Assembly (NCBI GenBank): GCA_047495785.1
Contig: JBLDXI010000009.1
Span: 62,001-126,000, forward strand
Reading direction: 5' to 3'
Length of the DNA: 64,000 nt
From: Lepidodermella squamata
Lineage: Eukaryota; Animalia; Gastrotricha
Part shown: one piece after another, positions 43,721 to 55,826 of the stretch
Layout: each line of letters opens with the position of its first letter
Numbering within the stretch: the stretch's first letter is position 1
Program-made: the position numbers and the translations under genes
Notes under the pieces: generated by a model
Told to the model about the DNA's origin: nothing
Seen by the model: only the letters and a program-made list of their open reading frames with translations
The model's database searches: none

Positions 43721-44920
43721 GGCCAACTGTTCCCAGGCGATGTCTCATTATCCTGCAGAATGTGCTCGCAAATGGTCTTCACAAGGAGTTGAAAAGCATC
43801 CACAGTCAAGGAAGGCATCCGTTTGCTCCCAACACCAAGAGTTCCAAATGCCAAGTTACAAGTTCCCTACCTTTTGTGATCTAGTTTTTTGCGGGCCCTT
43901 TCATTGGCTGAGAATGCCGACTTCACATGAAGGTCTTATCAGGACTAAGAAGTACTTCGCTGGCAAGAAGCTGATCCGTATTGGGAAACTTCCACTGCAC
44001 ATTCCAACTCTTACACTCTCGCAATTGTTCTAACTTCTCAACGGTCGAACTGGAGATGGAATGTCGGCTTCTAAACAGAATAGTGTTCAAGCATTGTCAA
44101 GCTGCGGGCTCCTCGCTTGTCGCGGCTGATGTTGTCGGAGGAGGTTCTCTCGTGAGAGGCGATTTTGTCGCGGTCGGCCAACATTTGAAAATTTTCCCGC
44201 CATTCGGATTATTAGTGTCTATTTTGATTTTATATGTATATTTCTTTGTAATTTCGAAAACATGAATGTTAAATGGGTCAAGATCACTAAGGCTAAAGTT
44301 GAATTACGTAATATAATATTTGCATATTCTGCATTCTCGACCTCTTCTTATCAGTTTACAGTGGTTTGTGGGTTGATTTATGCTTCTGAATGCTACCAGA
44401 TTCTTTAGTTAGAGGCGCAACTAGAAGGTCTTAGTGAAGTTCATTTTCGTAAATATAATATCAAACATTCGTCTTATAGATCTCGTTTTCTCCTTCTTCC
44501 TCCTTACTATTATTGTCTTAGGCTATTACAGTCAAAGGATGGAGGTAGAATCGCATCGGTAGAACGCTTAGTTTGTTGGTAGAACGTAGAACGGCGCATT
44601 TAGATAAGGCTTATCGCCCTATTACTCTAAACCTCTAAGAGGAAGCTGTCTGATGTCAAAAAAGCGCGATTCTACCGACGAAATTGAAAACGTCTAGCAG
44701 GTCGTCATCTCCGTCCTGCGTTGCGCTGAAGATGTATTATGGGTTCTAATCTTTTGATTCGTGTTTTGTTTTCGGCGCCCTTTTCGTAACGCGTTACTGG
44801 ATGCAGAAGTTATGTATTGTATGATTTATTTGGTAGATATTAGCTATTGTGCTATAGTTCACTGCTTCGCAGCTCCGAAAATAGGCCATTTACCCTTAAC
44901 GTTGTTTATCTTGAGGCAGT

Positions 44921-45443
44921 ATGCAGGTTCGCCTGATTATTTGCCGTAAAGTTATCAGGTCTCTTGTGAGTTACCGAGTACCTAGAAATTCGGTATGGAG
45001 CGACAAAAAAGATCATCTATCGGTGAGATTTTAACATAAATGCGAGGCGTTCTATTGAGCCGACCCGTGAACAGGCGTTTAATTCATCGGTGCCGATATC
45101 AGTTGAGCTGGTTAACAAATTAGAGCGACTCGCTCTAGTTGACTTTGGCAGTCAAAGAGGCGTGGACGTTTTGATAGCTGCTGTTCGCCTCGCTGACAAG
45201 TTGCGACTTGTTGATCATAGTTCTGAAGCCAAACCTTGTGTTTACATTCAAGATTTAATTTCCCAAGGTTCCAATCAGAATTTAGTGCTGAGGGACGATG
45301 AAATGTGTCAGAATGAGCCTAGAGCTGACATTATATCAAATGCATCAAAAATTGTCGAAAACTACTTTGTTTCACCCGTTGGCAACATAGCATTGCAACA
45401 AGAGAGCGACAAGTACGGCCTGAATGAACGAAATGGGAAATGA
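44921..45443 (+). CDS. GATC: Mitochondrial Glu-tRNA(Gln) amidotransferase subunit C; exons 44921-45022, 45075-45443
   Basis: LERLALVDF, LRDD, NASKIVENYFVSPVGNI; basic N-terminus consistent with a transit peptide. Confidence 0.85.
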
Positions 45444-45485
45444 TTTAATCGATTTAAATGCCATTTTAGAGGTTTATAAAACTCA

Positions 45486-46345
45486 ATGTCGTCCCGCCGT
45501 TGTACTGTGTTCGTTGGAAACTTGCCACCTAACGTTCAAAGGCAAGACGTCGAAGATGTGTTCCAAAAGTATGGACCAATTACGCGCATCGATTTGAAAG
45601 CCAACGGCCCTGATGCTCCAATTGCATTTGTCGAGTATGGAGATCCCCGTGATTGCGAGGATGCTATTCGTGGGCGTGATGGCTACGATATGGACGGCTA
45701 TCGCCTGCGGTGCGATATGTCTAATCGCGGGGAACGAGGTGGTGGCCGCGAAAGTTCCCGCAATGGCAGCGGCAGCGACCGCCACGAACGCAATATTCGA
45801 GGCTCGCGCCCGCCTGGCCCACCATCTCGCCGCACCGACTGGCGAGTACGTATATCTGGACTACCTAAGTCCGGAAGTTGGCAAGACCTAAAGGATCATA
45901 TGCGTTCTGCCGGGGATGTCTGTTTCTCAGAGGTTTACGGCGACGGGACTGGCACTGTTGAATACTCAAATTATGAGGATATGCGAACAGCAATTAAGAA
46001 ACTTGATGACACCAAATTCAAGTCTCACGAGGTAAGGTCTTTTGTTGTCTTGTTGTCAAGTATTTACGGATTTTTTTAATTTAGGGTGATACATCCTACA
46101 TAACTGTCGAGGAGGACCGTGGAAGCGCGAAAACTGCAGGTATTCCCCGCGGAGGCGGTCGTATCCGCGATCGCTCACCTGGCCGTGGTAGCAATGGCGG
46201 GCGTATGCGCCGTTCGCCGTCGTACTCGCCACCTGCTCACAAGAAAGGCGGCTCTCGCTCCAGCCCGTCCTACCGTTCGAGGTCACGTTCGCCGCGCCGC
46301 CACTCCCGTTCACCTTCACCGGTGCGTCGTGGTGGCTACAGCTAA
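45486..46345 (+). CDS. SRSF1: SR splicing factor SRSF1/9 (SF2/ASF); exons 45486-46031, 46085-46345
   Basis: RRM1 VFVGNLPP; pseudo-RRM SGLPKSGSWQDLKDHMR; KLDDTKFKSHE|GDTSYI; RS/SP tail. Confidence 0.95.
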
Positions 46346-47080
46346 TCTTGCCACATTCAGATGTTCTCAATGAATTCCATGTTTCGGCAATGACTTGTGT
46401 GTTGTGGTCCGGCATTTTCTTGTACATTGTTTCCACCACTCTTGTCTTATGTCTCGTTGGTGGTGGCTAATGAGGCCAGGTCACTTTTTGTACCTGTTCG
46501 TTTTCTTTTCAGTGCATTCCACTGTTCGTAGTCGTTTGTTTTAACGATTATACATATTCTAGGTTGTTGCTCACGTGATTTTTTGCTGCTGATTTTGTGA
46601 CTTGAGATGAGCTGGTGATGATGACGCTGATTGTCCAAACTGATGTTCTAGATCATTTGCTAGCCTATTGACTATTGATGTTGTTCTCCCACCCTCATTT
46701 ATTTGAACCACCTTCATCTTCTGCTTCGTCATAGCTTGCCGAAACGAATACATTGTTTATTGGAAGAAAACAAACGCAACAAGGAAAATTACAGCTGCAT
46801 TCGTCTTTTGTTTGTTGGAGTTGGAAAGGATGTGTAAGGAGAGGACATTGTAGGCTGGATGAGGACAGGAAGGAAGGAACCCCCCAAGAGGATGGATGAA
46901 ATTAAGCAAAGGAAAGGGAAATAACCAAGTTTGCCCTTTTTCATTGTTAACTCATATTTTTCTGGCCTTGTCTGTCTTTTTTCAGGCGGATTTGACTTGG
47001 ACCACCAAATTTGAAGTACCTCTCCAAAGTGGATGTTTGACATTATTCTATTCCACACACTAGGTTTTAGTTATTGTAAA

Positions 47081-47705
47081 ATGCCTTTCAAGTCTGACGT
47101 CATTGAGTCTGATGGGTCCAGTGATGACGACGCGGGGCACGAGGATCAGGACGATGTGCCGGTTTTGGATGACGACGAAGAACCGTCGACATCGGCGCGT
47201 CGGGGCAGGGGACGGGATGACGACGAAGAAGACGACGAAGATGAAGGCGCCAGAGCAGCGGAAAGTGCCATTGATCGTTCCAACTTCATCCCGTCTTCGG
47301 TGGTGCCGGCTTCGCTCCGCGGACTGCGCGCCTGCCTGCTATGCGCCCTCGTCAAAACGGCTGATCAGTTCGAAAGCAGCGGGTTTGTGTAGCAGCAATA
47401 ATGTTCAAAGTAGAAAAAATTGAATGGTTTCTCATTTTGCTAGGTGCGACAATTGTGAGCGGTTCTTGCAGCTGCGTGGCAATCGAGCTGCCGTTCTCGA
47501 GTGCACGTCGTCGTCTTTCGACGGTCTTGTCATGCTGATGTCTCCCTCCGAGTCGTGGGTCGCTAAATGGCTGCGATGGGATCGTGGCTGCGTGCCCGGC
47601 GCTTACGCTGTTTCCGTCAGCGGTCAGCTGCCGCCGGAAATCATTAGCGAACTCGAAGAGCACGGCTATCGCTATGTCTCGCGAGACACCAGCCTCCGTG
47701 CTTGA
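47081..47705 (+). CDS. SUPT4H1: Transcription elongation factor Spt4 with an acidic N-terminal extension; exons 47081-47382, 47444-47705
   Basis: [55 protein letters not shown], YVSRD. Confidence 0.95.
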
Positions 47706-48162
47706 GTAACCTTTGTTCAACCTCTACACTTCGTTTCTTTCGAATGGCTGTTTTGTACTGCATTGAATCTGGAAAATGATGATGAATAAAACATTTTATC
47801 TTACAAGTGATCTTTTGTAATCCTCGATTGGCGACAGGCAATGTTGTCTGAATTCTGAAATTTTGAAATTGCCTGTCAAAACGCGTCCCTTCTCTTCCTG
47901 TTAAGGGCGTCCGATTTATACGAGAATTTTATTCTTTTCATAACTAAAAATATAGCAATTAACGATTCTTGTAGAATCATGCGTATCATTCTTCAATTCA
48001 GGTATTGTAGTTATATAAGAAAGCGTGATTCGACTCGCATTAAACGAGATCGTAGAGAGGTACGTCAAAAAACGGGCAAAGTTTTGGGTTAGCAAGCGGG
48101 ATAAAATGGAGTGAAACGCAGCACACAGAAAGTTAGTTCCAAGACGTTTTATTGACTTCATA

Positions 48163-52437: not shown

Positions 52438-55400
52438 TTAGCGTGGAGTGCTGCCGCCGCTAGAGCCGAACGCCGAGCTGGTCATGCGCGCTTGAGGCAC
52501 GCCGATCGAAGACATGCGTTGCTGACCCCCATCGCGACCGCCCGCCATCGAACCGGAAGTGGCCGAGGCAGATATCGACGAGGCGATCGATGGAACGGAC
52601 GCCAGGCTGAGAGTGCTGGCGCTCACTGCTAGCAACTGCAGTTCAGCGTCATCGGTCGGCTGTTGAGAAGCTGCGGCTACAGCGCCGCAATCCAGACCCA
52701 GCGACGTCGTCTGCGAGTCAAACATGTCGAGATCTCGCCGATGGCGGTCGCGCAACGCAGCGAGGCGTTCTTTGCGGTCGGCGGCTAACCGGTCCGATTC
52801 ATTGTCCATTCGCTGTTCAAGAATGCCGAGCCGCAGTGAAACCTTGTGCTCGAGCCCGTCGCGCTCGCGCCGTTGCTGGGCAATCAGCGCCAGGCGAGCG
52901 CCTTCCTGCCATTGCACGAGCAGGGCCATTTCGTGGTCAAGCTCGGCGTCAAGTTGCGCCAGTTCTGCCCGCTGTGCGTCGGTCAGCTCAAGCGTCGCCG
53001 ATTCGCGTTCCGACAGAATGCGCTGTTCGTACTCGGCTGAGATGCGCCAGATGCGCTCGCGGCCTTCGTTCGTCTGCTGCATTTCTGGCGGGATACTTTC
53101 GATCGCTGCGCGAAGTTCACGCTTCAACTGTTTTTCGCGCCGCTGGAGATCACGAGGCAGCTGCTTCGTCTCGGCGGCCTGCTTCTTCTTCAGATCCGAT
53201 CTTCGCCGATCGGTATACTGGCACTGATTGGTGACTTCGAGCTGATGCTGTTCGGTCAATTGCTTTGACCTAAGCGCGTGCAGAGCATTCATATGCCGCA
53301 TTTCTATGTCCCGCTGGAGAACGAAAATATCGCAATTATAAAATTGCCCACCTTAATAAAATTCAGAAACTCACAAGAGTATCATGTTGTCGCATGAGTG
53401 TGTTATGCAATCTTTCCAGTTGCTCTTGCCTACTGTCCATATGTCTACAGACTAGATCCAACTCGACGCGCTGGTAACGGAGAAGCAAGCTCCTCGCCAG
53501 ACGCCGCTTCTCGAACGCCGCGACGGCCATTTGCCGCTCGGCTAATCTCGCCATTTCATTGATGCCATTATTTTTCCACTCGGTTTTCAACGACTTGACC
53601 CGCTTTTCGCGCTCCCCGCGTGCCAAGTCATTCAACTGCTTCTTCAGCTCGGCAACACGTTGTTTCCGCTCCTTTTTCTCCGTTGCCTCAAACCGCTTCC
53701 GTTCGTTCTCCTGTTCCAGAGAAATGCGACGGCTGACTTTCTTCTCGGCAGCAGCTGCCAGGCGCTGCTCGTTTTCCAGCTTGCGGCGGTCGGAAGTTAT
53801 CGCCTCGGCGAGTTCGCGCTCAACAACTTGCCGCAACTGCTCGTACTCGCGGTCGGCACGCGCTTTCTCGGCGTCGAGTTCGGTTTTACACCGCTGCTCC
53901 AACTGCGTCAGTTCACGCGCGTGTATCTGGCGTTGGCGCTTGTAGTTGTGCATATCCTCGTGCCAGTTACTATTGCCCAACTGCGCGTCTTGAATCTGCC
54001 GCCGCTGGGTGCGGATAGTCGCAACGCGGTCGCTGCCGAAATTACCACCATTAGCGAGAACCGACGCTCCAGCCAAGCCCGCCATCTGATTCGAAGCCTG
54101 TTGCTGCGCGTGATGCTGCTGCATCGCCTGATGGTAGGCGGCGATTTGCTGAGATGTCGGTTGTTGAAGTTGAGAATGGTGACTTTGCTGATGCTGTTGC
54201 TGTTGTTGCTGCTGCTGATAATGGTGACCGTGCTGGCCGTGATGGCCTCCCGGGGTCGGGGTACCAGGCACTTTCGGCGTTTCACTGCCACTCGACGCAG
54301 AACTTCGAGGCAAGTTGGCGCCCAATAACGCCGCTTGCTGGTGACCTGCCTTGTTGTGCTGCATAGCAGGCGAAGGTGGGACGCTGCTAGACAACGCGCT
54401 GCTTGCTTGCGGCTGCTGAGGCGGGTACTGCGAAAGGCGCCGACCCGCCACTGCACTACTGCCGCCATTCGCTGCTCCGGATGACTTCTGCTGGACCTGC
54501 GCAGACATCGGCCGCACCTGAGGCACCGTCTGTGGCTGTTGAACCTGTTGTTGCTGTTGATGGCTGCTCGCCGAACTAATATTACTATTACTAGCAATAC
54601 TGGAGCCATTGCTTAGAAGACTAGATGAGAGACCAGTTTGCGACGGCGTCCGAGTGCCTGATTCCGTGTCACCATCACGCTCTTCGCCGTGCTTCTCGTC
54701 ATTGCTGATGAACTTTCGCATGCGTCGCAATTCCAGATTGTTGAGTTGTCGAACTTGATTTTTCGTTCGCTCGAGCAAGTCTCGCAAATCACTCGACGCC
54801 GTCGAAATGTGGGAGGCGATGAAAGGCAGAGAAGTCAAGGCAGACGCCGACGGTCGGGAAGCCGGGTTCTTTTCGAGACAAAGCGCGATAAAATTTCGTA
54901 TTTCGTCGCTCCAAAACGGAGCAGTGTCACTGGAAGATTTATTCGACCCATCATTCTCGTTATTGGCCGGCGGTCGGTTTGATAGACGGGGCGGGTCGTT
55001 CTGCGGAATGTGGTACAAAGCCGCCATGGCATTCATGTGGAAGAGAGGGGGCTTCCGTTCCGCAAGTTCGATACACGTGATGCCCAAACTCCAAATGTCG
55101 ACTTTATGGTCATATTCGCCTGTATCCATCGCGACGATCATTTCTGGAGCCATCCAATACGGCTGAATAAGGTTACGATTTATCAGAGAAATGTGTTGAT
55201 TTATCACTTACAGTTCCAACGAAGCTGTTGGCGGGTGAGTGGAGCGATGCCGAACCGAAATCGCCTAGTTTCACGACCGCGTCGCTGGTCAACAAAATAT
55301 TGCCAGCTTTGACATCACGATGGATGATATCGTGGCTGTGAAGGAAAGCCAGAGCCAGAGCGACGGACATGGCTAGCCCAGCAATTTCACTCTCTCGCAG

Positions 55401-55826
55401 CGAATCTTTGGTGACTTCCAAGATGTCGGCGGCACTGCCGAGGCAATATTCCATGACCACCCAACAAGTATTCTGGCGCATGTAGGCTCCCCGAAGCTCG
55501 ACACAGTGCCGATGATGGATTCGCGACAATATTTCCACTTCTCGCCGAATGTCCGACCACTTTTCAGCCGACTTTTTACCTGAGAACTGCATCTTCTTAA
55601 TGGCAACGATTTCATGCGTCTGGCTATGCTCAGCCTAAAGTGTAACAAATTGTAAAAATCCAAGTGAAAATCAATGACGGAAGAATCAAACCGCATAGAC
55701 AGCTCCAAAGTTGCCATGGCCAATCTCTGAGAAATTCACGAACAAGCGTTCAGGATCATCCGTTGAAAACAAGGCCAAAGTCGGATCGGCATTCTTTGAT
55801 GATGACTGAAACAAGTTTTTAGCCAT
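52438..55826 (-). CDS. TAOK: TAO (STE20 family) Ser/Thr kinase, 4 exons
   Basis: [59 protein letters not shown]|[29 protein letters not shown], long coiled-coil tail. Confidence 0.96.

Follow-up and report, generated by a model that had tools for sequence, protein, structure and literature searches.

A candidate spliced-leader-resolved operon of GatC and an SRSF1/9-type gene in the gastrotrich Lepidodermella squamata

In the gastrotrich Lepidodermella squamata, a gene for a GatC-like protein ends 42 nucleotides (nt) ahead of the start codon of a serine/arginine-rich (SR) splicing factor gene of the SRSF1/9 type. The pair lies in a 64,000-nt stretch of contig JBLDXI010000009.1 (GenBank assembly GCA_047495785.1, positions 62,001 to 126,000 of the forward strand), which we call the window and whose own numbering is used below. 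With SPT4, the two make up a set of three unrelated housekeeping genes arranged head to tail on the plus strand at 44921-47705. We conclude, with a probability of roughly 55%, that GatC and the SR gene form an operon whose transcript is resolved by the addition of a spliced leader. This reading is the best fit because the two genes, each complete and of a different family, are on the same strand and only 42 nt apart, the gap holds an acceptor whose position is conserved in a diverged relative, and the genome carries abundant genes resembling those for spliced-leader (SL) RNAs. The original prediction, made from the letters of this stretch, had proposed a polycistronic transcript resolved by SL trans-splicing. 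The gap, the conserved acceptor and the SL-RNA-like genes fit that proposal, while we infer leader addition at 45470 (or 47071), joint transcription from one precursor, and the site at which the GatC mRNA ends.

Leader-resolved operons are known from nematodes, tunicates, flatworms and rotifers, and the GatC-SR locus appears to be a further candidate for this mechanism. Gastrotrichs are spiralians allied to flatworms, so a gastrotrich leader system bears on whether trans-splicing is ancestral or has arisen repeatedly in that part of the animal tree. Full-text searches found no literature on spliced leaders, trans-splicing or operons in gastrotrichs, and the L. squamata genome paper makes no mention of operons or trans-splicing (PMC11660948). 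Should the operon reading be correct, the locus would offer a clean, small example of leader resolution in Gastrotricha, and its near-zero spacer would be useful for studying the coupling of 3'-end formation and leader addition.

The GatC-SR junction and its conservation

The features of the two genes and of the junction between them, all on the plus strand, are as follows.

44921-45022, plus strand: GatC exon 1 (34 codons), encoding a basic N-terminus resembling a mitochondrial presequence
45023-45074, plus strand: GatC intron of 52 nt (GTGAGA...AACAG), leading in phase 0 into the frame at 45075
45075-45443, plus strand: GatC exon 2, with the stop codon TGA at 45441-45443
45423-45428, plus strand: AATGAA from a motif scan, a common variant of the poly(A) signal inside the end of the GatC coding sequence and a candidate for GatC use
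45464-45469, plus strand: TTTTAG, candidate spliced-leader acceptor and the sole pyrimidine-AG (YAG) in the GatC-SR gap
45486-46031, plus strand: exon 1 of the SRSF1/9-type gene, with two RRMs (Pfam RRM_1, 1.5e-29)
46032-46084, plus strand: SR gene intron of 53 nt (GTAAGG...TTTAG), from sequence and frame
46085-46345, plus strand: SR gene exon 2, an open frame for an Arg/Ser-rich tail, with the stop codon TAA at 46343-46345

The gap between the GatC stop and the SR start codon (ATG, 45486-45488) spans 45444-45485 and is 42 nt long, as originally claimed. It likewise lacks AATAAA in a motif scan and contains the predicted acceptor, CATTTTAG, which ends at 45469 and would place the start of a trans-spliced exon at 45470. 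The acceptor lies 26 nt past the GatC stop and leaves a 16-nt SR 5' untranslated region (UTR). Joining GatC exon 1 to 45470 is, as had been noted, out of frame with the SR ATG, and no fusion reading frame can run through the acceptor, since a TAA (45477-45479) interrupts it in frame before the ATG. The statement that the gap has no GT donor was too strong: there is a GT at 45472-45473 (GAG/GTTTAT), although nothing in the gap makes a good donor.

Exons were queried singly rather than as joined spliced proteins. The first gene is accepted as GatC by transitivity through an open reading frame (ORF) on a contig from another organism (L009; JGI Ga0307384_10022243). GatC exon 2 matches Pfam GatC (PF02686) with E=6e-4 at 20.3 bits, which is sub-threshold (cut-off 23), but against the L009 ORF the protein shows 49% identity (tblastn 6e-26), and that ORF in turn matches Pfam GatC at 8e-13 and 48.8 bits. 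The identification also draws on an exon-1 motif, [IV]PxxSxW (here VPRxSxW), common to three sequences in all: the window gene, L009 and the relative described below (L001:307-408). Protein identity to the relative's ORF is 45%, and a profile match to Aquifex GatC in the PDB is weak (E=0.36). The complete GatC ORF has 156 codons, and an AG at 44918-44919, 1 nt 5' of its ATG, is a possible acceptor. For SR exon 1 the top named matches are animal SRSF9 and SRSF1, at 52-58% identity. The SRSF1/9 type is characterised by an RRM, a pseudo-RRM and a C-terminal Arg/Ser tail; two RRM stretches and such a tail are present. The locus is single copy, with no retrocopy or second copy in the genome searched (a 121.2-Mb assembly of 151 contigs).

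The best protein match to the SR exon (72% identity) led to a diverged relative, represented by four ENA metagenome contigs (L001, L002, L007 and L008) that are identical across the gap and therefore count as one lineage. The GatC, SR, SPT4 order is kept in the relative, and the SR gene has the same structure. The spacings compare as follows.

GatC stop to SR ATG: 42 nt in the window, 44 nt in the relative
GatC stop to the single YAG: 26 nt in the window, 27 nt in the relative (TATAG)
YAG to SR ATG: 16 nt in the window, 17 nt in the relative
SR stop to SPT4 ATG: 735 nt in the window, 759 nt in the relative
SPT4 stop to the next gene: 954 nt in the window, 171 nt in the relative

The relative's GatC has an extra intron about 40 nt before its stop, and the gap layout is kept regardless. 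An AATAAT that overlaps the relative's GatC stop is a candidate 3'-end signal. Outside exons, the two species have no k-mer blocks in common except in the SPT4 poly(A) region, indicating that non-coding sequence is saturated. As judged from the two sequences, it is the kept geometry of the junction that, among the evidence from this locus, argues most strongly for a constraint on processing in the gap.

The acceptor signal in the gap exceeds chance modestly. Across the window TTTTAG occurs at chance level, with 43 copies against 42.8 expected on both strands, or about 1 per 2,900 nt per strand. When the 42-nt gap was shuffled with its composition kept, 4% of trials had TTTTAG and 18% a pyrimidine-rich YAG; in 5%, both species had a YAG at offsets that agreed to within 1 nt.

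Genes resembling spliced-leader RNA genes

The original prediction proposed searching the genome for SL RNA genes as a check. That search returned SL-RNA-like genes, two per rDNA/5S repeat: a pair of small paralogues adjoins 5S in every 8.46-kb ribosomal DNA (rDNA) repeat (L003:1784-2345, minus strand). Both genes start with ATATCTGCG and have an exon of about 31 nt ending in ...TTTTCTGAG or ...ATTCTAAG, followed by a GT donor, an Sm-like site and a terminal 3' hairpin. The two SL exon ends found here are ...AAATTTTCTGAG and ...CGAATTCTAAG, and the first exon with its donor is present in 455 copies. This architecture of exon, donor, Sm-like site and hairpin is the basis on which we identify the genes, and their leader function is putative. 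An Rfam scan of the window gave no match, and neither did a comparison of the SL exons with viral contigs. About 40 nt upstream of 5S there is a motif of about 24 nt, CGCCAATGACCAYGTGCATGTGGT, that is repeated upstream in the spacer (L003:1650-1680 and L003:2170-2200, minus strand) and may be a promoter element shared by these small RNAs.

SL exons also occur without the donor, in 27 and 28 copies at 55 dispersed sites. Each of these copies joins the exon, precisely at its last base, to the 5' end of one of many different elements resembling long interspersed nuclear elements (LINEs; L010-L029). One such element stands behind either SL exon with unrelated upstream flanks, its copies being at least 99.5% identical over 1.4 kb. 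The junctions could be retrocopies of trans-spliced RNA or the outcome of insertion specific to the SL donor site. The base after the exon is A in 49/55 copies, a bias that fits site-specific insertion too. A search for junctions between element and SL intron gave 0 matches, although target-site duplication would hide such junctions. We had considered the SL-exon/LINE junctions as DNA-level proof of trans-splicing and downgraded them once site-specific insertion was weighed; they support the identity of the SL genes and are not proof of leader use.

Weighing the operon and its alternatives

Under the operon reading, a single GatC-SR precursor would start upstream of GatC, at a promoter in the divergent region that GatC shares with a minus-strand PHD-finger gene, and would be resolved by SL trans-splicing at the AG at 45468-45469. 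The SR mRNA would then carry a leader of about 31 nt and the 16-nt 5' UTR. The GatC 3' end would form inside the 26-nt spacer, directed by a signal at or before the stop, for which AATGAA at 45423 is the candidate; a 3' end within 26 nt of the stop would imply a signal in the coding end and tight coupling with trans-splicing, in the manner of tunicate operons. SPT4 would be a third cistron, through an acceptor at 47070 or 46985, or would have its own start. The functions brought together here (mitochondrial translation, splicing and transcription elongation) are of a kind typical of animal operons, as seen in those of C. elegans.

More tentatively, and with the odds against it, gastrotrich operons in general might combine three properties: a length-constrained spacer of 26-27 nt between stop and acceptor that is kept between diverged lineages, an upstream 3'-end signal placed in the coding end, and polyadenylation coupled to leader addition.

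Two observations concern the region upstream of GatC. GTAGAAC occurs three times within 35 nt (44559-44593), about 330-360 nt upstream of the GatC ATG, and was not found upstream of the relative's GatC. An E2F-like motif of the TTTC(C/G)GCGC type lies 130-200 nt upstream of GatC in both species. Beyond the SPT4 AATAAA region, the comparison with the relative revealed no non-coding blocks or promoter motifs in common.

Several results weigh against the operon reading. The acceptor motif is short, and its presence and its conserved offset each reach only about p=0.04-0.05 against shuffles. The comparison involves effectively one other lineage. Moreover, both flanks are collinear in the two species, with the minus-strand PHD-finger gene upstream and a minus-strand leucine-rich repeat (LRR) gene downstream, and because the whole neighbourhood is collinear, gene order alone is no proof of operon constraint. 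Word searches recovered no same-species transcript products for SR exon 1, GatC exon 2 or the SPT4 exon-1 ORF, and exact look-ups of 13 window or neighbouring ORFs (the SR ORF, two others from the window and ten that look single-exon) found none. A metagenome scan with the GatC profile returned only L009, from another organism. As for the SL genes, the Rfam SL1 and SL2 models do not match the genome, a null result that the tool's own warning describes as uninformative; the predicted fold energies of the SL RNAs are no better than those of shuffles; and the SL-exon/LINE junctions can also be read as site-specific insertion at the SL donor.

The alternative that survives best is one in which the SR gene has its own promoter and transcript start inside GatC. 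TTTTAG would then either go unused or serve to add a leader to a monocistronic transcript with a short outron, and no polycistronic precursor would be made. We give this a minor though real chance of being correct. In its favour, SR genes are strongly and GatC usually weakly expressed; the acceptor statistics are modest, and the general collinearity accounts for the conserved gene order. However, such a promoter would need to sit within GatC coding sequence in both species, and the relative has an extra GatC intron about 40 nt before the stop with the layout of the gap maintained. The 42-44-nt spacing, held amid saturated non-coding sequence, points instead to a constraint on processing.

A second alternative, put forward beside the operon in the original prediction, has GatC nested in a 5' UTR intron of the SR gene. 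In this model an upstream non-coding SR exon is cis-spliced to 45469 and one promoter yields two mRNAs. The two genes do share a strand and one obvious upstream promoter region, and no cis donor is visible near the acceptor, as the model requires. The intron would nevertheless exceed 550 nt, against 52-61 nt for the introns of this locus, and splicing GatC exon 1 to 45470 would create an out-of-frame upstream ORF overlapping the SR ATG. A conserved upstream exon was looked for between the two species and not found, and we regard nesting as improbable. About as improbable is a mature bicistronic mRNA with an unprocessed gap, in which ribosomes reach the SR cistron by leaky scanning or by reinitiating after GatC. 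A spacing of 42 nt would allow reinitiation, and in another organism the intronless contig L009 carries a second ORF along with GatC. Against this, one would hardly expect a splicing factor that is abundant and essential to be translated as the second cistron after an ORF of 156 codons, the conserved acceptor position would be left unexplained, and the SL-RNA-like genes provide a simpler route.

SPT4, known operon systems and other gene neighbourhoods

Whether SPT4 belongs to the GatC-SR unit is doubtful, since it lies 735 nt downstream of the SR gene. The relevant features, again on the plus strand, are as follows.

46346-47080, plus strand: SR-SPT4 spacer of 735 nt, presumably SR 3' UTR
47065-47070, plus strand: TTTTAG from a motif scan, candidate leader acceptor for SPT4, ending 10 nt 5' of the SPT4 ATG
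47081-47382, plus strand: SPT4 exon 1, encoding an N-terminal acidic extension and the first part of the zinc finger (Pfam Spt4 positions 1-18, E=0.013)
47383-47443, plus strand: SPT4 intron of 61 nt (GTTTGT...GCTAG), from sequence and frame
47444-47705, plus strand: SPT4 exon 2 and stop (Pfam Spt4, PF06093, positions 21-77, E=2.3e-18)
47785-47790, plus strand: AATAAA from a motif scan, the only canonical one of the cluster, 80 nt past the SPT4 stop

A TTTTAG just before the SPT4 ATG had been noted and does occur, although the ATG is at 47081 and not 47082. The acceptor lies 10 nt from the ATG here but 38 nt from it in the relative, a spacing that is not conserved, and a strong acceptor-like sequence, TTTTTTCAG, ends at 46985 within the spacer. 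The spacer contains no AATAAA in a motif scan, and its sequence is not conserved with the relative, its length alone being alike. In both species canonical AATAAA is confined to the region after SPT4, which is not unusual by chance. The relative's copy (L001:3212) lies inside an 11-mer, TGAATAAAACA, common to both.

SPT4 exon 1 is 57% identical to the relative's exon-1 ORF (P0121). The acidic N-terminal extension, about 65 residues ahead of the zinc finger (47081-47280), is matched by an extension in P0121; human SPT4 is short and is not known to have one.

With almost no intercistronic region, the GatC-SR arrangement seems closer to the tunicate type of operon than to the nematode SL2 type. 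The operons of Ciona and Oikopleura, which use a single spliced leader and have little or no intercistronic region, similarly place same-strand housekeeping genes a few tens of bases apart, with an acceptor just 5' of the downstream ATG and a 3'-end signal that falls at the end of the upstream gene or within it. They differ in the sequences of their leader genes, and in L. squamata both leader addition and the joint precursor are our proposal. C. elegans operons likewise cluster unrelated mitochondrial and RNA-processing genes and use a TTTTAG-like acceptor, and the SL RNA genes here are linked to 5S rDNA as are those for nematode SL1. In contrast, SL2-type operons have an intercistronic region of about 100 nt with a U-rich element, for which the 26-nt stop-to-acceptor spacer is too short. 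A specialised downstream leader is not evident here, and the Rfam SL1 and SL2 models give no match. Trans-splicing in flatworms and bdelloid rotifers resembles the proposed system in that the short leader comes from a small RNA of many copies, equipped with a donor and an Sm-like site, whereas the leaders, so far as they were compared, are unrelated in sequence. Operons are few or poorly documented in those two groups.

In other lineages too, GatC may be the upstream cistron, paired with a different partner, judging from the arrangement on L009. This contig (L009:1-1962) is intronless and probably a transcript. Its GatC ORF (36-482; Pfam 8e-13) is followed after 125 nt by an MBD2/3-type ORF (608-1201), and the contig looks bicistronic. 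The MBD2/3-type ORF was found on that contig alone.

Human GATC and SRSF9 are convergent and separately transcribed. As in L. squamata, GATC has an SRSF1/9-family gene close by: the gene list for 12q24.31 (chr12:120.35-120.67 Mb) comprises MSI1, COX6A1, GATC, TRIAP1, SRSF9, DYNLL1 and COQ5 (PMC11061283). The GatC-SR pairing could be a remnant of an old animal linkage visible at human 12q24.31, or a coincidence. Around the SRSF1 homologues of Lingula, Styela and Elysia, no GatC turned up within 10 kb. A UbiE/COQ5-type gene adjoins two SRSF1B genes in Lingula (L031), and the COQ5-like gene of the L. squamata genome is on the same contig as the GatC-SR pair, 1.75 Mb away.

A survey of stop-to-ATG junctions over 264 kb gave 63 candidates against 7 in reversed sequence. 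It was set aside and is not used as support, because cis introns are mixed with gene junctions and the spacing has no sharp peak. One such case is a kinase gene on the minus strand of the window (52438-55600), where two ORFs are separated at 55173 by a very short gap that is an intron. The same gene is followed, 61 nt after its stop at 53363, by an ORF of 287 amino acids with no family match and with TTCTCCAG placed 12 nt before its ATG, making this another tight same-strand junction in the window.

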